From NCBI GenBank assembly GCA_013416795.1, contig RQSC01000014.1:486768-550767 (forward strand): DNA of 64,000 nt. Reading direction: 5' to 3'. How positions within the stretch are numbered: the stretch's first letter is position 1; every line of letters begins with the position of its first letter. This DNA comes from Prasinococcaceae sp. CCMP 1430. Taxonomy: Eukaryota; Plantae; Prasinodermophyta. The position numbers and the translations under genes were made by a program. The notes beneath the pieces are model-generated. The model was not told the DNA's origin. It searched no databases and worked only from the letters and a program-made list of their open reading frames with translations. Of the stretch, positions 1-49,304 are shown piece after piece.

Positions 1-186
1 GCGCCATGCAGCGCCCCCGGCGTCCAGGGCCTGGCGCCCGCAGTGGCCGCGCGGGTGTGCGCCGCGCTGCGCGCGCGCGGCGTCGCCGGGGGCAGCGACG
101 CGCCCGACGACATCGTGGCGGCTGCCAGGGAGGTGCTGCGCGAGGAGGCCGCGGCCCAGGCCGCAGCGCCAGCCGCGACGGCGTAG
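1..186 (+). CDS. C-terminal end of an unidentified gene running in from the left edge
   Basis: Frame 1 is open from base 1 to TAG at 184-186 (...APDDIVAAAREVLREEAAAQAAAPAATA*), with GCC/GCG-rich codons; an AT-richer 3'-UTR-like patch (tgtacagtaacaaa) follows at about 217-230. Confidence 0.45.
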   Translation, partial: APCSAPGVQGLAPAVAARVCAALRARGVAGGSDAPDDIVAAAREVLREEAAAQAAAPAATA

Positions 187-494
187 CAGAGCGGTGTGCG
201 GGCTGTGTTTCGTGTCTGTACAGTAACAAAGTGTGTGTACACAGGGAGGCGCGAGCGCCGCCGCCGCCGCGCCACAGCAGAGCCTCAGCGCGCCGCTGGG
301 GCCGACCGCTTGTCTCGGGCGCGTTCCTCGCGCGCGGCCGTGAGGCCAAGAGCCTGGGGGCAGGAACTCTCGGAGAGGCCCGGCGCGTGGCGATGGGCGC
401 GCCGTCCGGTGCGCCGCGCAGCGCGCGCCTGGGGCGGCGCGGACGCTCACATGCGCACACACACGTGCACACACACATGCACACGCAAACATAG

Positions 495-746
495 GCCGCC
501 CAGGCCGTGTGCCTGTTCGCGTACACCGCCGGCCCCGGCTGCGAGGTGCACCTGTTCGAGGGCGTGACGGAGGGCACCATCGTGCCCGCTCGCGGCCCGA
601 CCACCTTCGGCTGGGACCCCATCTTCCTGCCCGACGGCCACGAGCAGACGTACGCGGAGATGAGCAAGGAGGACAAGAACGCCATCTCGCACAGGTACAG
701 GGCGTTGCAGAAGCTCAGCGCCTTCTTCGGCGCGGGGCAGCAGTGA
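495..746 (+). CDS. ITPA: Inosine triphosphate pyrophosphatase (Ham1 family), last exon only
   Basis: AQAVCLFAY...[49 protein letters not shown] carries the FGWDPIF and SHR signatures; acceptor ATAG at 491-494 (or CAG at 501-503); N-terminal half not found. Confidence 0.92.
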
Positions 747-40959: not shown

Positions 40960-41151
40960 ATGGAGAGCCACCAGCCCGTGTCGTTCGCGAGCGGGGCGGG
41001 GTACGGCGCGTCGGGCACGCCCTACATTTGCGGCGACTGCGGCGCCGAGAACAAGATCAAGCAGGGAGACGTCATCCAGTGCCGCGAGTGCGGCTACCGC
41101 ATCCTCTACAAGAAGCGCACCACCAAGATCGTGCAGTACGAGGCGCGCTAG
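40960..41151 (+). CDS. RPB12: RNA polymerase I/II/III common subunit RPABC4
   Basis: [40 protein letters not shown] zinc ribbon. Confidence 0.96.
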
Positions 41152-41397
41152 GCGGGGCGCGGAGCGCGCCGCGGGGCGACGGCTAGGGCGCGCGGGCGGC
41201 GGGGACAGGGGTAGCCGGTAGCAAGTGGGGGAAGGGGGGGGCGGGGGAAAAAGAGGGTGCTTGGGAGGCCGGCGTCGGCTCAGGCGGCGACGCGCGCAGA
41301 GGAGGAGAGCGCCGTAGCCGCCGAGGCGCGCGGGCCACCAGCGGGTCGAGATCATGCGCGTGGCGGCGGGCGGGGCGGCGGCGAGCGGTACACGTAC

Positions 41398-42378
41398 ATG
41401 GGCCACGACGTCGGCGCCGAGCGCGGCTCGATGATCAACAGACAGGGCCTGAGGCTGGCGACGTACACGTGGCGGTGCCGCCGGGGGCCGCCGCGCGGCG
41501 TGGTGGTGGCCGCGCACGGCCTCGACGTGCACGCCAAGTTCGACATGCTCAAGGCCAGCGAGCCGGGCAAGCCGCACGTGACCAACACAGGCGTCGCCGG
41601 CGCGCTCTCCGGCGCGCACGGCCCCGCCGCCGAGCGGCCCGACTTCGCGTGCTGCGACGTGATCGGATTGGATCACCAGTCGTACGGCGAGTCGGAGGGC
41701 GCGCTCGGGCCGAAGTACCGCTCCTTCTTCTGGAGCTTCCAGGACCTCGTGGAGGACTTCGCGCAGCTCATCACTCAAATCCGCGCGGAGCCGCGCTACG
41801 AGGGCCTGCCGGTGTTCCTCAAGGGCAGCTCGCTGGGAGGCGGTGTCTGCCTGGCCATCGCGGCGACGCGACCCGATCTCCTCGACGGCTTCGTGCTGGT
41901 GGCGCCGCTCATCACGCTGGATCGCGTCAAGTCGCAGTCGTGGAACCCCTACCTTCGACCGCTGGCGGGGCTCATCAGTCGCATCTACCCCACGCTGCCT
42001 GCGGGAACGAAGAGCCCCAACCCCAACAGAACGCAGTACGAGGAGTTCGAGGTGGACGAGCAGACGCACAAGGGAATGGTGCGCGCGCGCGTGGCCACCG
42101 AGGTGCTCAACTACACCGACGCCGTGGTGGAGCTGCTGCCGCGCGTCACCGCGCCCTTCCTCGTCCTGCACTCGCCCGGCGACAACATGACCGAGTTCGC
42201 CGGCTCGCAAATGCTCATGGAACTCGCGGCCACGCCCGCCGAGCTCAAGCGGCTGGATGCCATCGACGGGTGGCACGCTGTCCTGCACGAGAAGGACGGC
42301 CACAAACACATTGCCACCATTGCTGAGTGGGTGGCGGAGCGCGTCGCCGCGCACGAGGCCAAAGGCGCTCAGCAATAG
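41398..42378 (+). CDS. Alpha/beta hydrolase, monoacylglycerol lipase / lysophospholipase (Hydrolase_4) family
   Basis: VVVAAHGL, LDHQSYGESEG, GSSLGG nucleophile elbow, VLHSPGDNMT (Asp), GWHAVLHE (His): triad intact. Confidence 0.9.
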   Translation: MGHDVGAERGSMINRQGLRLATYTWRCRRGPPRGVVVAAHGLDVHAKFDMLKASEPGKPHVTNTGVAGALSGAHGPAAERPDFACCDVIGLDHQSYGESEGALGPKYRSFFWSFQDLVEDFAQLITQIRAEPRYEGLPVFLKGSSLGGGVCLAIAATRPDLLDGFVLVAPLITLDRVKSQSWNPYLRPLAGLISRIYPTLPAGTKSPNPNRTQYEEFEVDEQTHKGMVRARVATEVLNYTDAVVELLPRVTAPFLVLHSPGDNMTEFAGSQMLMELAATPAELKRLDAIDGWHAVLHEKDGHKHIATIAEWVAERVAAHEAKGAQQ

Positions 42379-42602: not shown

Positions 42603-45600
42603 TCAGTCGGCGACGCCGAACGCTGAGAGCACCGCCTCGAATGCCGCGCTGGCACGCGCCATCGCCAGCATGCGCTCGCGGAGGTCCTTCTTGCGCTGGG
42701 GTTTCTCTGCGGCGAGTTTTTCCTTCCCGATCGTCGCGGCCGCTGCAACCTGCTCCATTGGCGTCATGGTTTCGAAGCGCGGCTTGCGCGGACGGCCCGG
42801 CCCGCGCCTCCTGGGCTCCCCGGCGGCGCCACCACCTTCGCCCGCGGCGATGATGTCGGCCTTCGTCGCGTACTGCGCTGCGTGCACGCCGGTGAGTGCC
42901 ATCACCTTGGACACCGGGACCAACCCGCACAGCTGCTGCTGTGGCATGTCTTCCCTGCGCTGGCGCTTGCCGCCGCGCCCGTTGGCGTCTGCGGCGCGCG
43001 CGCGCCCCCCAGCGCGCTCACGCTTGCGCTGTGCCTGTGCCTCCATGTACGCCTCCTCCTCCTCAGGCCGCACGATGTCCCACACCTCCTCGTCGGCGCT
43101 GTGCGATCGCACGCACTGCACGGCGCGGACGACAGAGCATCGCGCCGCGGACACGTCGATCTCGCGCGCTTGCCCCTCCGGCACCACCTGCCAGCGCGGG
43201 CGCCCCAGGCGCTCCTTAGCCGTGCGTGCCTCGCGATCCGTGAAGACGCCCACGTCGTGCACCGGCAGCAGATGCACCCACTGCATGTCGGGGATGTAGT
43301 GGTAGACGAAGTAGTACTTGTGCGCGTAGCACGGCGGGAGGCCCTCCACCTCGACAACCTTGTTGTACAAGTTGGTCGCGCGCTTCCCACGCACCAGACG
43401 GCCGTTCTGACCACGCACCGCGAGTTTGGCAGCGGGGGACGAGTGCGTGATGCCCTCGTTGTCGCGCTCTGCCATCCGCGCCGTCGCGGCGGCCACCTCG
43501 TTGGGCTTGCACGCCACGGGCTCCGGATGTGCCTTGACGTGCTTGGCCGTCAATTCGTCGAGCACGTCCTGCCGCACCTTTCCGTCGGCGTCCAGCCCAT
43601 CGGCGCCACGCAGCGCCATGGCTGGGCGCGCCGCCCGCACGAGGCGTTTACGAAGAGCCGCGAGCGCTGGCGTTACCTGCGCAGTGCCCTTCGCTGGCGT
43701 CTTCTTTCGCGATCCAGACCTGGTGGTCTTCCTCTTGGACGTTCCCGGCGTGGCCGCTGCCGAGGCGAGCGTCTCGTCCGCAGCCTGTTGGCGTGCCTGC
43801 TGGTCCGAATCCTGCTGCTGCTGCTGCTGCTCCTTGCCGCCGCCCGCCGAGCCGAACATGTGGTCGTCCTCAGCCAGCTCGTCGGCGTGCTCGACGCGCG
43901 AGTCGCGCACTGCGGCCGCAGCGTCGTCGGCGTCCTCATATATGCCGAGGTAATAGTTGTGCCCCTCGGCGGTTGAGTGTTTCGCGGCGAAGCGACGCCC
44001 GCGAGGCACCACGCCGTCGCCCGGGGCACTTGCCACGCATGCGTCGCGAGACGCAACGCCGCTCTCAGCCGCAAGCTGCTCATCGCTCGGTTTGGCCAGG
44101 CGCATCACCATCATGATTGAGGGAAACTGATCCTCTACCAGCTGGTCGGGGAACGTCCAGTGGCAATAGCCGAGCACGTCAGGATCCCTGTACGCTTCAG
44201 CGACGTACGCCGGGTGGTCCATGATCGGCGCCTTGACGCCGCTGTGCGCGGGCTCATCCTGATCGGGCGGCGTGCCGGTCGTGTTGTCGCTGTCATCCTC
44301 ACGCGTGCCGCGGCGCACAAACTGCGGCAGCGCTTTCTGCCACCGCGCCAGGATGGCCTTGCCCTGCTCGAGCATGAGCGCTGCTGACTGGTGATACACG
44401 CTGTCTTCAGGATTGTATTCCATGGCATTCTTGCAAATCGTGGCGAAGTCGGCCTCGAATTGGCCGAAGGACTCGTACCGGCCCGTCTGCACAAACGCCA
44501 GCATGTCGAGGAAGGCCAGCGGGCGCTTGATGCGCTTCGCGTAGTCCCAGAGCTCGTCGGTGTCCACGGGCGACTGGAAGACGCCGTGCTCGTCGAGCGC
44601 GCGCAGCTGCTTGAGGCAGTCGCGAAGCGACTTGTGAAGCCAGTACATGCGCGGCGCCCAGATCGCGCCCGAGGACTCGCGCACCACCTTGAGGCGGGCG
44701 GGCGGCTTGATGGTCGGTTTGGCCGTGCTCGGGTGCGCACGGACGGCCACACCCGGAATGTGCACCACATCCTCGCCGGCAGTTTCCTTGCGCGCTTCAA
44801 TCTCGGCCACGGGTCTGTAGCAGGCCATGCCGCCGCAGCGGCGGAATCCCATGGACTCGTAGAACGGCACCGACGAGTCCGTGGCCTGCAGGCAGACGTA
44901 CTCGTACTCGCTCTCGGCCGCCAGCTCGTCGAGCGTCGCCTGCAGCACCGCGCGCCCACAGCCAAGGCCGCCGAGCAGCGAAATCTCCGCCACCTTGCGC
45001 CAGATGACGCCCTCCTCGTCAGGGTCGCCGAAGCGGGGCGTCTGTTCCAGCTCGGCAGCCAACACGCCGCTGGCATCGCACTTGCGGTGGCGCCAGTCGT
45101 CGCGCGTGATGCCGCTGAGCGCGCAGGCGCTGTCCCAACGGAACCACGGCTGCCAGGTCGTGAACGTCGTCACCGTCACGAAGCCCTGCAGCCAACCCTG
45201 CGCCCGCGTTCTGACCGCGTAACCGAACATCGGGTCGTCGGTGTCGATGCGGTCGAGGATGAACTCCAGCAGCAACGGCTTGGCCTCCTGCCCACCGGCC
45301 GACCGCTTTCTGTCCGAGTCCTCCGCATCGGCCTGCCTCTTCTCGTCCTCGAGGTCCTTGAGGCGCAGCTTCGCGTCGAGGGCGTCCTGCGTGTACACGT
45401 CATCGCCGGTGTCGCTCTTTTGCGTGCCCGCAACGACGATCGCCTCCTGCTCCTCGACCGCTGCGCGCCAGATCTGCTCGCGCGCGCGCTTCGCCGCACG
45501 TTCGGCGTCGCGCTCCTTGCGTTGCCGCCGCCACGCTGCCTCGTTGCACAGCTGCAGTATCTCGGCGAGCATGGCCTTCCACTCGCTGCGCTCGGTGACG

Positions 45601-45812
45601 CGTACGGCCACCGAGCCCTCCAGCGGCGCCTCGCCTCCACGCGCGCTCCCCCTGGCGGCGGGTACGAGCTCGAAATCGTACGGCGCGTCCGCGACGCGCC
45701 CGCACAGCCGCCTGCGCGAGCTCAGCTCGAGGTCGCGCTGCGTTAGCTCGAGCGCCCCCTCGTCGGCCGCCCCGCCTCCGTCGGCGGGCTGCGCGTCCTT
45801 GTCGGCACCCAT
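42603..45812 (-). CDS. Multidomain chromatin protein: GNAT acetyltransferase-like domain, bromodomain, uncharacterised beta-rich C-terminal domain, AT-hook
   Basis: EISLLGGLGCGRAVL...YVCLQATDSSVPFYESMGFRR (GNAT motifs A/B); FQSPVD...DYAKRIKRPL...FATICKNAMEYNPEDSVYH (bromodomain with YN); RRRGPGRPRK (AT-hook); ATG at 45812. Confidence 0.8.
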   Translation of the reverse strand: MGADKDAQPADGGGAADEGALELTQRDLELSSRRRLCGRVADAPYDFELVPAARGSARGGEAPLEGSVAVRVTERSEWKAMLAEILQLCNEAAWRRQRKERDAERAAKRAREQIWRAAVEEQEAIVVAGTQKSDTGDDVYTQDALDAKLRLKDLEDEKRQADAEDSDRKRSAGGQEAKPLLLEFILDRIDTDDPMFGYAVRTRAQGWLQGFVTVTTFTTWQPWFRWDSACALSGITRDDWRHRKCDASGVLAAELEQTPRFGDPDEEGVIWRKVAEISLLGGLGCGRAVLQATLDELAAESEYEYVCLQATDSSVPFYESMGFRRCGGMACYRPVAEIEARKETAGEDVVHIPGVAVRAHPSTAKPTIKPPARLKVVRESSGAIWAPRMYWLHKSLRDCLKQLRALDEHGVFQSPVDTDELWDYAKRIKRPLAFLDMLAFVQTGRYESFGQFEADFATICKNAMEYNPEDSVYHQSAALMLEQGKAILARWQKALPQFVRRGTREDDSDNTTGTPPDQDEPAHSGVKAPIMDHPAYVAEAYRDPDVLGYCHWTFPDQLVEDQFPSIMMVMRLAKPSDEQLAAESGVASRDACVASAPGDGVVPRGRRFAAKHSTAEGHNYYLGIYEDADDAAAAVRDSRVEHADELAEDDHMFGSAGGGKEQQQQQQDSDQQARQQAADETLASAAATPGTSKRKTTRSGSRKKTPAKGTAQVTPALAALRKRLVRAARPAMALRGADGLDADGKVRQDVLDELTAKHVKAHPEPVACKPNEVAAATARMAERDNEGITHSSPAAKLAVRGQNGRLVRGKRATNLYNKVVEVEGLPPCYAHKYYFVYHYIPDMQWVHLLPVHDVGVFTDREARTAKERLGRPRWQVVPEGQAREIDVSAARCSVVRAVQCVRSHSADEEVWDIVRPEEEEAYMEAQAQRKRERAGGRARAADANGRGGKRQRREDMPQQQLCGLVPVSKVMALTGVHAAQYATKADIIAAGEGGGAAGEPRRRGPGRPRKPRFETMTPMEQVAAAATIGKEKLAAEKPQRKKDLRERMLAMARASAAFEAVLSAFGVAD

Positions 45813-46040
45813 GATCGCAGCAGCAGCAGCAGCACCGGCAGTGGCAGGACGAGGAGAAGGACGTGCAGGAGCAGGAGCAGGCCCCTAATGCCCTGTCACG
45901 CGGCCGCTCGCCCACCGCCGCCGCTTCCGCCGACTGCGAACGCCGTCGCACACAGGCTCGCCCGCGTGGGCCTGCGCCCTCCCTCCCTCTGGCCCGCGCG
46001 CGCGCCCTTCGCTTCGCGGCGCGCGCGCTCGCCGCCGCGG

Positions 46041-46456
46041 NNNNNNNNNNNNNNNNNNNNNNNNNNNNNNNNNNNNNNNNNNNNNNNNNNNNNNNNNNNN
46101 NNNNNNNNNNNNNNNNNNNNNNNNNNNNNNNNNNNNNNNNNNNNNNNNNNNNNNNNNNNNNNNNNNNNNNNNNNNNNNNNNNNNNNNNNNNNNNNNNNNN
46201 NNNNNNNNNNNNNNNNNNNNNNNNNNNNNNNNNNNNNNNNNNNNNNNNNNNNNNNNNNNNNNNNNNNNNNNNNNNNNNNNNNNNNNNNNNNNNNNNNNNN
46301 NNNNNNNNNNNNNNNNNNNNNNNNNNNNNNNNNNNNNNNNNNNNNNNNNNNNNNNNNNNNNNNNNNNNNNNNNNNNNNNNNNNNNNNNNNNNNNNNNNNN
46401 NNNNNNNNNNNNNNNNNNNNNNNNNNNNNNNNNNNNNNNNNNNNNNNNNNNNNNNN
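46041..46456. other. Assembly gap (N run)
   Basis: 416 consecutive N between divergent genes. Confidence 1.
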
Positions 46457-46667
46457 GCGCGAACCCGGGTGTGGCGCGGGGCTCGCGGCGCCCAGACCGC
46501 GCCGGGGCGCGCGCATCCCCCCCCCCCACACACACACACACCCCCACCACGCCTGCCTCCTTGCCGGGCCCACACCGCGCTCGCCCAGCGGGGCGGGTGG
46601 GTGGGGTGGGGTGGAGTGGGGGGGGTGTAGAGGTGCTGGGGTGAGTGCTGGGAGGGAGGGGGAGGCG

Positions 46668-49304
46668 ATGCGGCGGCGGGGGACGCCGCCCGCCCGCGCT
46701 CTCCTCGCGCGGCTTCGGGCGTTCGCCCTGGCCTCGGCGCTCACGCTGGCGCTCGCGCGGTGCGCCGGGGGGCTCTCGCTGCCGACGGTGCTGCCGAGCC
46801 GCAGCGGCGTCACGCCCGTGCTCTTCAAGGCCGAGCGCGGCGCGCCAGGCGCGAACGTCGAGGGCGTGTCCGGCGGAGCGAGCGGGGGGGGCGGAGCGGG
46901 GGACGGGGCGCGAGCTCGACGAGGCGGCGAAGGGGCGGGCGATGCGGTCGACCTGGGGCCAGTTGCGTTCGCAGGCAGGGGGGCGCGCTCGGTGCTGGCC
47001 TACGGCCACGCGGCAATCACGCGCAGGTGGGGTGCAGGCGCGGGCGGAGTGGACGGGGCGGGCGCAGCGCCGGCTCGCGAGCGCGTCCTCGTAGCGTGGA
47101 TGTGTGGGGAGGGATACATTCCCCGCTGCGATGCGCGTTGGCGCCGCGCCGCGCGAAGCGCGCTCGCCGACGACGCGGCGGTGCTCGGTACGCTCGCCGA
47201 CCAATTCGCGCTGGAAACGCTGTTTATCGCGGGGGCGCCGCCGCCAGGCGCGGCGGCGCGAGCTGCGCTCGCCGCGGAGCGCGATGCGCACGGCGACGTG
47301 CTCACAGTGTCGGCTCCCGTGGCCGGCGCCGGCGTGGACCGCCCCGCTGCCCGTGTCGCCTCGCTCGTCACGTACATCACACGCTTCTGGCCCGCGCGGC
47401 ACGCATTCGTCGTCAAGGCCGACTGCGGCGTGCTCGTCCGGCCGGCGCCCCTGCTCAAGGCGGCCCGTGACGCGGCGCGCGCGGCTGGCAGTGGCGCGCG
47501 CTTGCTAGCAGCGAAATGCATGGAGCCCGTGCGTCGTGGCTCCGACGTGGTGCTCGCGGACAGCGCGTGCTATGCGGCGCTGGGCGCGCAGGCGTACATG
47601 CCCGGCAAAGAGGCCCGCGGCACGAGCAGGGGCAAGACAAAGCGCGTCGCCGCGTCGCCGAAGCGCGACTCGTGGGCTGTTTCGCTGCTCAGTTCGTCAG
47701 CGCCCCCGGCAGTCGAGGAGGTGATTGCGGCGGCGGCGGCGAACGGCACAGGCCGGAAGGCTCGATTCGCCGGCGTCGACCCCTCGGCGTACATGCTCGG
47801 CTCCGAACTCGTTCGCGTGCTCGCGGAGGCCGTCGCCCCGCGGCACGTCGGCACCTCCGAGGTGGCTTCGACGCCCCTCCCAGAGGTTCTCGCGCGCAGC
47901 GAGGCAGCGCTCCTCGCGCATGTGCTGCCCGATGCCGTGAGTCCGCGCGCTATGTTGCGCGGATGCGCGGGACCGCGCTGCATGCCCGAGCAGACGCAGT
48001 GGTGCTCCGCCAGCGACGGCTCCGCGGACAGCCTGGCATTCGTGAGCGAGCTGGGTGCGCATGCCCTCGATGGGGTGGCGCGTGCCGTGCGCTCGCTGGG
48101 CAAACTGTGCTTTCAAGAGTGCTACGCGGCGGCCAATGAGCTCGCGCGCGGCGCGCAGGCGGTGCGCGCGCTGCTCGCAAGCCGGACGCCCATTCTTCCA
48201 GGCACAGCGTCCGCTATCATGCCGGCCGCAGGCGGACCCAATGAGGCTGATGATGGCGGTGCGCTCTCGGTGGCAGCGGCCGTGGCCGCCGCGTGTGGAC
48301 CCATTCGTGCTCCAGGTGAGGGTGTGTCAGAGCTGGCGCTGAATGCGGCGAGCGCTTCCGCGGAAGGGAGTGGACGCGACATCCCCGCGCTGCTCATTTC
48401 GCTCGACGGCGAACGCTCATCTGGCGCGGAGGCACGCCTGCTCGCACGCCACGGAAAAGTGTTGCGTGTACCGGCTTTGGACGCGCGCGATGCTGCGGCG
48501 GCGGAGCTGGACGCCGCGGCTGCAGGTGCCTCGGCGCTCGTGTCGCTCGGTGTGAACAGCGCTGGCGAAGTTGGTTGCACCGTGAGCCACCTGCGCGCGG
48601 CAGCAATGGTCGTGGCTCTTGATCTTCCTGTCGCCCTGGTCGCGGAAGATGATGCGAGCTTTGAGCTCATCGATGGGAGCTTTGGAGGTGCCGTCGTACC
48701 CGATCTCGCCGAGCTGCCGGCAGATTTTGCCGTGCTGCAGCTTCTCGTCCACGCCTCGTGCGCGGAGCTAGTCGCTCTCCACTCCGCGTGGCTCGAAGCC
48801 GGCAGGCCGAATGCCATGGAGCACGCGCGCGACTCCCACCACAGCACGGGTGCCTACCTGCTTTCGCAGCGAGGCGCACGAGACATTGTGTCAAGGTTCA
48901 CGCGTGGCGGCGAGGAAACCGTGCGCGCACTGATGGAGTGGGGGCGGGAGGGGGGCGTTAGCGCCCACGAGAGCGGGCTCAGTGTATCGGGCGACGCCCG
49001 CGCGTTGGCGCGGCTCTCCCGCACTGTTGTCGAGCTTCCGTATGACCTGGCGCTCGGGAGGTGCGCCTCGTGCGGCGGCTGCGCGACCGCCGATCGCTGT
49101 GTTGTATACTCGGCCGAGCACCATACCGGGGGCGTGTATGTGGCAACACCGCCTCGTATGGTAGACACGCTCGCTGTTGGCGACAGCGGCTCAATCCATG
49201 CCAAGAATAAGGCGTATCATCTCGCGAGCAGGGATTTCGTGCTCGCGTGGGCGAGCGCCGCTATGCAGTGTGATGCACTCGAAGCTGCCGCGGGGACGAC
49301 CTAG
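46668..49304 (+). CDS. Type II membrane glycosyltransferase with GT31-like and GT25-like domains
   Basis: Basic N-terminus plus hydrophobic anchor (MRRRG...AFALASALTLALA); LAAERDAHGDVL, FVVKAD (GT31-like); LLISLD...LRVPALD...GEVGCTVSHL...ALVAEDDASF...GAYLLSQRGA (GT25). Confidence 0.72.
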   Translation: MRRRGTPPARALLARLRAFALASALTLALARCAGGLSLPTVLPSRSGVTPVLFKAERGAPGANVEGVSGGASGGGGAGDGARARRGGEGAGDAVDLGPVAFAGRGARSVLAYGHAAITRRWGAGAGGVDGAGAAPARERVLVAWMCGEGYIPRCDARWRRAARSALADDAAVLGTLADQFALETLFIAGAPPPGAAARAALAAERDAHGDVLTVSAPVAGAGVDRPAARVASLVTYITRFWPARHAFVVKADCGVLVRPAPLLKAARDAARAAGSGARLLAAKCMEPVRRGSDVVLADSACYAALGAQAYMPGKEARGTSRGKTKRVAASPKRDSWAVSLLSSSAPPAVEEVIAAAAANGTGRKARFAGVDPSAYMLGSELVRVLAEAVAPRHVGTSEVASTPLPEVLARSEAALLAHVLPDAVSPRAMLRGCAGPRCMPEQTQWCSASDGSADSLAFVSELGAHALDGVARAVRSLGKLCFQECYAAANELARGAQAVRALLASRTPILPGTASAIMPAAGGPNEADDGGALSVAAAVAAACGPIRAPGEGVSELALNAASASAEGSGRDIPALLISLDGERSSGAEARLLARHGKVLRVPALDARDAAAAELDAAAAGASALVSLGVNSAGEVGCTVSHLRAAAMVVALDLPVALVAEDDASFELIDGSFGGAVVPDLAELPADFAVLQLLVHASCAELVALHSAWLEAGRPNAMEHARDSHHSTGAYLLSQRGARDIVSRFTRGGEETVRALMEWGREGGVSAHESGLSVSGDARALARLSRTVVELPYDLALGRCASCGGCATADRCVVYSAEHHTGGVYVATPPRMVDTLAVGDSGSIHAKNKAYHLASRDFVLAWASAAMQCDALEAAAGTT

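Follow-up and report, generated by a model that had tools for sequence, protein, structure and literature searches.

The window analysed here, a 64,000-nucleotide stretch of contig RQSC01000014.1 (assembly GCA_013416795.1, positions 486,768 to 550,767), carries on its reverse strand a gene (42603–45812; Table 1) that probably encodes a nuclear, DNA-tethered protein acetyltransferase of a previously unannotated GNAT family. In the predicted models the catalytic domain adopts a GNAT fold that is divergent yet genuine and is split three ways, into β1-α1, α2-β6 and β7, and sequence and model comparisons support a bromodomain looped out between β6 and β7. What is new here is the GNAT family, the insertional topology and the partner module; the kind of protein, a GNAT acetyltransferase with a bromodomain, is known. 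The host is a prasinodermophyte green alga (Prasinoderma coloniale; Viridiplantae, Prasinodermophyta) of a deep-branching lineage that is neither stramenopile nor haptophyte.

A word-based search with amino acids (aa) 170–580 of the window protein, our query, retrieved 82 proteins, and a second search with the domain of a compact relative gave 96 more. Pairwise and iterative mapping revealed four conserved modules in a fixed order: an N block (aa 28–108), a core (168–335), a short block (530–585) and a C module (808–925). The N block is conserved in most relatives, where it directly adjoins the core, and in ~12 of them (e.g. P0030, P0031, P0040, P0045, P0050, P0055 and P0065) the N block, core and short block are contiguous and form a domain of ~290 residues. 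The model of one such compact protein (P0050:55-355; predicted local distance difference test score (pLDDT) 87.9, predicted template modelling score (pTM) 0.86) has the GNAT element order. Foldseek searches with this model returned 203 PDB matches at E ≤ 1e-3, and each of the 50 best listed has the GNAT fold. Superposition with VIA yielded 129 chains at Z of at least 8 (top Z 11.7); these alignments span model residues 42–296, and therefore the N block provides β1 and α1 and the short block provides β7.

The same arrangement is seen in the model of the whole query (pLDDT 73.8, pTM 0.72), which was built, like our alignments, with P0001 as the first row, an environmental variant that differs from the window protein only by G12V and K493R. 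Solved GNATs align from residue 66 of this model, as they do from residue ~42–48 of the P0050 model. For RimI, 144 of 156 residues align over query-model positions 66..582 (VIA, Z 10.7), and residues 64–575 are covered by the alignment with a bacterial GNAT cluster from the ESM Atlas. Strand β7 lies at 566–571 with a pLDDT of ~94, and the complete order in the models is β1-α1-α2-β2-β3-β4-α3-β5-α4-β6-β7. About 100 residues of the GNAT domain are family-specific, namely the β3-β4 region with TTFTTW...FRWDS and the long α1; the charged hairpin that the query carries after α1 is modelled as two long helices (82–129 and 142–171, pLDDT >90). The initial annotation, made from the sequence alone, had placed a GNAT-like core at 45270–44830 (aa 181–328), which falls inside the conserved core, and the GNAT fold that it expected of this segment emerged unambiguously from the fold searches.

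The bromodomain itself is readily recognised. Pfam Bromodomain scores 54.8 bits over aa 400–478 (cutoff 21.7), and in a search of PDB sequences the nearest solved bromodomains are those of BRPF1, BRD1 and BRD9 (E 2e-15 to 1e-11, BRPF1 being the best at 2e-15). The domain superposes on the BRPF1-H4K12ac complex 4qyd with Z 16.7 and a root mean square deviation (rmsd) of 1.4 Å over 114 residues (388–501; VIA). Y466-N467 aligns with the YN of BRPF1, and the ZA-loop Tyr, Y424, with the Tyr of its PDY motif. With a four-helix bundle, the acetyl-lysine-anchoring Asn of the BC loop and the ZA-loop Tyr all present, and a Pfam score over threshold, this is by sequence and model a competent-looking bromodomain, as had been proposed for positions 44640–44380 (aa 391–478). 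The linkers on either side of it (349–360 and 502–527) have pLDDT values below 50 in the whole-query model.

It had also been suggested that the strand YCHWTFPDQ...MMVMRL downstream of the bromodomain might complete the GNAT fold, i.e. that the bromodomain is inserted into it. Both proposals are borne out. Relatives devoid of a bromodomain conserve the short β7 block too; this block directly follows the core in the ~12 compact relatives and forms β7 in the models, and solved GNATs align across query residues 66–582 and 64–575. In every insert-bearing relative the extra residues lie at one point, between the GGMACY strand after α4 and the Y-x-H-W-T-F/S-Y-M-M segment, which refines the original proposal in that β6 (GGMACY) precedes the insert. 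In a maximum-likelihood tree of the family's GNAT columns (51 rows of alignment A2, with fragments and the hybrid proteins P0011/P0012 left out), all eight bromodomain-insert proteins fall into one clade with support 100/98, which fits a single insertion event.

Downstream of β7, aa 598–645 read as a divergent AP2-type domain and putative DNA binder, on the basis of sequence profiles and the model. The strands of the unit are modelled at 601–604, 607–613 and 619–625 and its helix at 628–641, with pLDDT values of 85–92. A profile built from eight clade members has as its top five PDB matches WRI1 (6e-8), AtERF1 (7e-4 and 9e-4), ERF096 (1.4e-3) and TEM1 (0.078). Pfam AP2 does not match the query and gives 14.7 bits for one relative (cutoff 33.3); the AP2-type helix of the query is the most divergent of its clade. 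The linker that follows contains Lys/Arg-rich stretches that have the appearance of nuclear localisation signals.

The all-β C module is conserved in most full-length relatives. It has no match in Pfam or among PDB sequences; its ESM Atlas features gave weak, sub-threshold PWWP, BAH and Tudor leads and nothing for a second member, and whole-model fold searches were filled by bromodomains or family members. ESM Atlas models of family members can be superposed on query residues 61–904, from the GNAT domain through the C module (~290 residues, rmsd 4.4–4.6 Å). This co-alignment, together with the pTM of the whole-query model, suggests that the C module packs on the GNAT domain. One relative, P0071, has two copies of the module (aa 632–742 and 965–1075), and it therefore behaves as an independent, duplicable domain. 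Closer to the C-terminus, the AT-hook reported in the initial annotation does exist as the motif RRRGPGRPRKPR. It is a weak site: it arises in ~3% of composition-preserving shuffles and is absent from the aligned tail of the nearest relative, P0002. The tails of other members (P0036) contain tandem AT-hooks with the same RGPGRPRK core. The annotated set of GNAT, bromodomain and AT-hook-like site was thus present, and the AP2-like domain and the conserved C module had been overlooked.

Across 66 sequences of the family, 18 positions do not vary: D192, P194, G197, Q209, G210, T215, E276, L279, G284, G286, A310, F317, Y318, E319, F323, G327, W552 and M568. GNATs have a pyrophosphate-binding P-loop with the consensus Q/R-x-x-G-x-G/A before α3 (PMC4964394). 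The P-loop of the query is G281-G-L-G284-C-G286, in which the fourth and sixth positions (G284 and G286) are among the invariant residues; α4 carries F317-Y318-E319, and β6 is GGMACY (327–332). When the family profile is compared with PDB sequences, the P-loop and the α4 FY..GF motif align with those of PaiA, with G-L-G shared and the invariant Y318 aligned with the Tyr of PaiA's motif. A conserved Tyr acts as general acid in 62% of characterised GNATs (PMC4964394). From sequence and models, the GNAT domain is predicted to carry out acyl-CoA-dependent acetyl transfer.

The company that this domain keeps in other species points to chromatin. Named sources of family members are cryptophytes (Baffinella, Hanusia), diatoms (Seminavis, Cyclotella, Amphora, Corethron), bolidophytes (Triparma), pelagophytes (Aureoumbra, Chrysoreinhardia), MAST-4, haptophytes (Chrysotila, Chrysochromulina, Prymnesium), Picozoa and an MMETSP entry 'Norri...'. 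The block DRIDTDDP...GFVTVTTFTTW...FRWDS, which the initial annotation associated with unannotated stramenopile or haptophyte proteins, is a signature of the family in those groups and also in cryptophytes, Picozoa and the green alga of the window. No prokaryotic member was found in the word-based search with the compact relative's domain. A scan of IMG/VR contigs with family patterns found no viral relative, and a viral origin was rejected on that result. Public names refer to accessory domains only ('Bromo domain-containing', 'HMG box domain-containing', 'LysM domain-containing') or are hypothetical, the exceptions being a few JGI entries ('predicted GNAT family N-acyltransferase') and one automatic UniRef name ('Histone acetyltransferase').

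Fusion partners in the family are overwhelmingly chromatin readers and DNA binders (HMG box, chromodomain, YEATS, PHD, Myb, bromodomains, AT-hooks). The slot after β7 holds an HMG box in the majority clade, a chromodomain in some haptophyte-type proteins and the AP2-type domain in the query clade; further C-terminal additions are a bromodomain, YEATS, PHD, Myb and AT-hooks. Bromodomain and YEATS, which both read acyl-lysine but are unrelated to each other, have been recruited independently. In most members (P0024, P0057, P0011, P0065 and most of P0015-P0082) the β6-β7 loop contains two LysM domains, and a group that contains Picozoa has both a bromodomain and LysM pairs there. The architecture GNAT[bromodomain]-AP2-C module is common to the window protein, P0007/P0124 (Aureoumbra lagunensis) and P0014 (Chrysoreinhardia), which form one well-supported clade. 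That a prasinodermophyte and pelagophytes have it in common reflects either gene transfer between marine picoalgae or an ancient origin with losses.

Taken as a working enzyme, the window protein would be anchored on DNA at target loci by its AP2-type domain, possibly helped by the AT-hook. With acetyl-CoA as donor, the GNAT domain would then acetylate lysines in histone tails close by or in other chromatin proteins, and the bromodomain, held on two flexible linkers of ~40 residues each, would bind acetyl-lysine beside the active site. Such binding would retain the enzyme, so that the same nucleosome or those next to it would tend to be acetylated further. We infer the lysine or histone substrates, the nuclear location and the read-write feedback from the domain content. 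The disorder of the linkers makes a fixed geometric coupling of the bromodomain to the active site unlikely, and this is the first of several points that weigh against the proposal.

Others concern catalysis and would fit a catalytically dead GNAT-fold scaffold, a pseudoenzyme that binds chromatin and DNA multivalently through the bromodomain, the AP2-type domain, the C module and the AT-hook. The P-loop starts with Gly instead of Gln/Arg, and the Asn usual before α4, which is also the family consensus, is Ser in the query. Pfam Acetyltransf_10 scores 22.7 bits over aa 282–327 of the query, under the gathering cutoff of 23.6 (the relatives P0020, P0008, P0162 and P0204 exceed it with 34.3, 26.5, 24.2 and 24.3 bits). 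The invariant E276 sits 5 residues before the P-loop, compared with 11 for the Glu of PCAF (PMC4964394 numbering); equating it with the general-base Glu of GCN5 was rejected on this difference in spacing, and no general base is assigned. We nevertheless regard a pseudoenzyme as improbable. Atypical P-loops are also found in the active GNATs Hpa2 and AAC(6')-Ib (PMC4964394), and across the 66 divergent sequences the invariant residues concentrate in the cofactor loop and α4 (G284, G286, A310, F317, Y318, E319, E276), which is the pattern expected under selection for catalysis.

The remaining points concern the acceptor. A chromatin-tethered GNAT might instead modify the N-terminal α-amino group of histones (as Naa40/NatD does), a polyamine-like small amine or an amino sugar, with the readers and DNA-binding domains serving only to localise it. 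Many N-terminal acetyltransferases (NATs) rank among the top VIA matches, with Z values of 11.7 for Ard1, 11.1 for RimI, 10.6 for Naa60 and 10.4 each for Naa10 and NatD, alongside 10.9 for the glucosamine N-acetyltransferase 5kf1. In the GNAT fold β7 slots in between β5 and β6, and acceptor binding involves both the C-terminal strands and the β6-β7 hairpin (PMC4964394). The α1-α2 and β6-β7 loops, which gate the acceptor site in NATs, are both elaborated in the window protein. LysM domains normally bind glycans, and their presence in the β6-β7 loop of most relatives suits an acceptor of this kind and fits a histone-only account poorly. The differences in Z are within ties, however (9.8–11.7 in the best 50 rows), and sequence profiles do not place the family in any Naa family (Naa50, E 0.24). 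Fusions to acyl-lysine readers (bromodomain, YEATS) and to a methyl-lysine reader (chromodomain) fit histone lysine marks better. We consider another acceptor unlikely, and retain lysine acetylation of chromatin proteins as the preferred reading.

How the protein relates to known acetyltransferases was assessed by profile and by fold. Searched against all PDB sequences, the family profile has its best match in PaiA (E 0.0016, over the P-loop/α3/β5/α4 segment), followed at a distance by Naa50 (0.24, over 44 residues), and finds no GCN5 or PCAF chain at E ≤ 10. Structural scores are flat over the GNAT subfamilies, with Z falling from 11.7 to 9.8 across the best 50 VIA rows at 10–22% identity. 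In scans of the query, neither Acetyltransf_1 nor PCAF_N of Pfam was matched, nor any NCBIfam family. The view that the GNAT segment belongs to a family separate from GCN5 thus holds: the best sequence match is PaiA, the fold matches are spread over subfamilies, and clustering inside GCN5 or a known Naa family was not seen against PDB sequences and folds.

The closest functional parallel is GCN5/PCAF (KAT2), which like the window protein combines a GNAT-fold domain with an acetyl-lysine-binding bromodomain on one polypeptide and likely follows a common logic, that of a writer retained by its own product. A divergent KAT2 orthologue would account for the joint presence of the two domains, and GCN5/PCAF does appear at Foldseek ranks 10–15, with VIA Z values of 10.0–11.9 for ctSAGA Gcn5. 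It is nonetheless a very improbable identity for this gene. The histone acetyltransferase (HAT) sequence is not that of KAT2 (no Acetyltransf_1, different E276 spacing), and neither is the layout: the bromodomain of GCN5 follows a complete HAT domain, whereas that of the window protein lies within the fold, in the β6-β7 loop, and is nearest to those of BRPF1, BRD1 and BRD9 rather than to GCN5's own. Beyond generic GNAT motifs there is no detectable sequence kinship; the window protein has an AP2 domain and a C module in addition and no PCAF_N, and its family has invariant motifs of its own and a compact, bromodomain-free form.

NATs and RimI (Ard1/Naa10, Naa50, Naa60, Naa40) give the best superpositions, with Z 10.4–11.7 over ~140–160 residues. 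The β6-β7 hairpin, which forms part of the substrate site in Naa50 (PMC4964394), corresponds to the loop that is elaborated in the window protein. A sequence relationship to the Naa families did not emerge, with identities of 13–17%, profile E-values of 0.24 or worse and an empty NCBIfam scan; the window protein also has the ~100 extra family-specific residues (β3-β4, long α1). We know of no chromatin-reader fusions in NATs and of no auxiliary-subunit context for the window family. Small bacterial and archaeal GNATs (PaiA 1tiq, 8osp, PA1377) are the best matches by sequence (E 0.0016) and by Foldseek (4e-6) and share the segment of P-loop, α3, β5 and α4, including the FY-x-x-x-GF motif, at 11–16% identity. 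They are, however, single-domain proteins of 150–180 residues whose substrates are small molecules or unknown.

A different comparison is with ApiAP2-GCN5 systems and plant AP2/ERF-HAT recruitment, in which targeting of the acetyltransferase to particular loci also relies on an AP2 domain; a Babesia AP2-GCN5 complex is named in the title of PMC13720069. Both kinds of system keep AP2 factor and HAT as distinct polypeptides that form a complex, whereas the window protein unites them in one chain, and its sister clades carry an HMG box or a chromodomain in the AP2 slot. The 'novel HAT' families of oomycetes (PMC5112689), which are fusions with LCM, fascin/DUF706 and PhzF, were considered and rejected as unrelated. 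In the literature we found no description of this GNAT family or of the insertional architecture, though an earlier mention may exist.

The gene reads as 1069 codons without an internal stop, in a single exon within the window, and the DNA has ~68–71% G+C. An assembly or gene-model artefact, such as two genes fused by a long GC-rich open reading frame (ORF), has to be weighed here: a genome of ~70% GC abounds in long spurious ORFs in every frame, a run of N (~46000–46500) forms an assembly gap immediately upstream of the gene, and the public gene model has a different 5′ end. We give this explanation almost no credence. Dozens of relatives show this module order, among them complete MMETSP transcripts (Aureoumbra, Chrysoreinhardia), the identical ORF is present on independent Tara scaffolds, and all modules fold with high confidence. 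On the Tara Oceans scaffolds, which are metagenomic contigs and not transcripts, the ORF also has the neighbours that it has in the window. The EukProt entry Prasinoderma_coloniale PRCOL_00007008-RA (P0083) falls into the 90%-identity cluster of the window protein and is identical to it from residue 59 to the end. The single ORF originally annotated at this locus is uninterrupted and recurs, identical or nearly so, on Tara Oceans scaffolds and in the P. coloniale proteome. In the public model the first ~54 residues are Arg/Ala-rich and unrelated, and the family-conserved YDFELVP motif is missing (window 45650–45812 (-), aa 1–55); the motif is present in the uninterrupted window ORF, and from this sequence comparison the annotated 5′ exon of PRCOL_00007008-RA is probably mis-modelled.

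Several neighbours were identified. Divergent to the gene, and separated from it by the run of N, is an ORF of 1138 codons (45888–49304, (+)), the C-terminal part of which weakly matches Glyco_transf_25 (26.9 bits). Downstream and convergent with the gene lies an α/β-hydrolase of the Hydrolase_4/S33 type (41257–42378, (+); 112.6 bits), and beyond it an exon for the zinc ribbon of the RNA polymerase subunit RPABC4 (41011–41151, (+); 64.5 bits).

Table 1. Features of the acetyltransferase-like gene, with window coordinates and strand; predicted assignments are worded as such.
Feature	Position	Strand	Remarks
Whole gene	42603..45812	(-)	Single uninterrupted ORF, 1069 aa counting stop; Prasinoderma coloniale PRCOL_00007008
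GNAT piece 1 (aa 40-108)	45489..45695	(-)	Conserved N block: YDFELVP motif, strand β1 (67-72), start of helix α1
Charged helical hairpin (aa 109-167), lineage-specific	45312..45488	(-)	Inserted after α1; 64-aa insert relative to compact relatives
GNAT core (aa 168-335)	44808..45311	(-)	α2, β2, β3, family-specific β3-β4 elaboration, β4, P-loop, α3, β5, α4, β6
Loop-out between β6 and β7 (aa 336-544)	44181..44807	(-)	Two disordered linkers flanking the bromodomain
Bromodomain (aa 382-495), BRPF1/BRD1/BRD9 type	44328..44669	(-)	Y424 and Y466-N467 in place
GNAT piece 3 (aa 545-575)	44088..44180	(-)	Y-x-H-W-T-F motif (W552 invariant) and strand β7 SIMMVMRL (M568 invariant)
Putative divergent AP2/ERF-type DNA-binding domain (aa 598-645)	43878..44021	(-)	β-β-β-α unit
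Low-complexity linker (aa 646-810)	43383..43877	(-)	Poly-Q and Lys/Arg-rich stretches; pLDDT mostly <50
All-β C module (aa 811-915), family-specific	43068..43382	(-)	Seven strands, pLDDT 88-96
AT-hook-like motif RRRGPGRPRKPR (aa 1001-1012)	42777..42812	(-)	Disordered stretch
Conserved C-terminal helices (aa 1038-1069)	42606..42701	(-)	Helices 1040-1054 and 1056-1064; 63% identical to the C-terminus of P0002

To our knowledge, histone acetyltransferase families are few, and most ideas about how marine phytoplankton regulate their chromatin derive from yeast, animal and plant paradigms. Our broader interpretation, which we hold to be about evenly balanced, is that these proteins form an unrecognised family of chromatin lysine acetyltransferases of ecologically dominant marine protists, with the window protein as its green-algal representative. 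On this interpretation a permissive β6-β7 loop near the acceptor site has repeatedly captured entire domains (a bromodomain, a LysM pair or both), the slot after β7 is interchangeable between AP2, HMG box and chromodomain, the all-β module is obligate, and one polypeptide would act as sequence-specific transcription factor, writer and reader. The family also raises evolutionary and mechanistic questions, among them the architecture common to a prasinodermophyte and pelagophytes and the role of the LysM pairs in the β6-β7 loop of most other members of this chromatin-type family. A reader looped out of a catalytic fold by the acceptor site is a natural domain insertion in which the coupling of writer and reader is directly testable. 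If active, the enzyme would be a lineage-spanning writer that annotation pipelines at present label through its accessory domains only, and the presence of AP2 or HMG on the same chain points to a direct path from DNA sequence to acetylation that would not need adaptor complexes.

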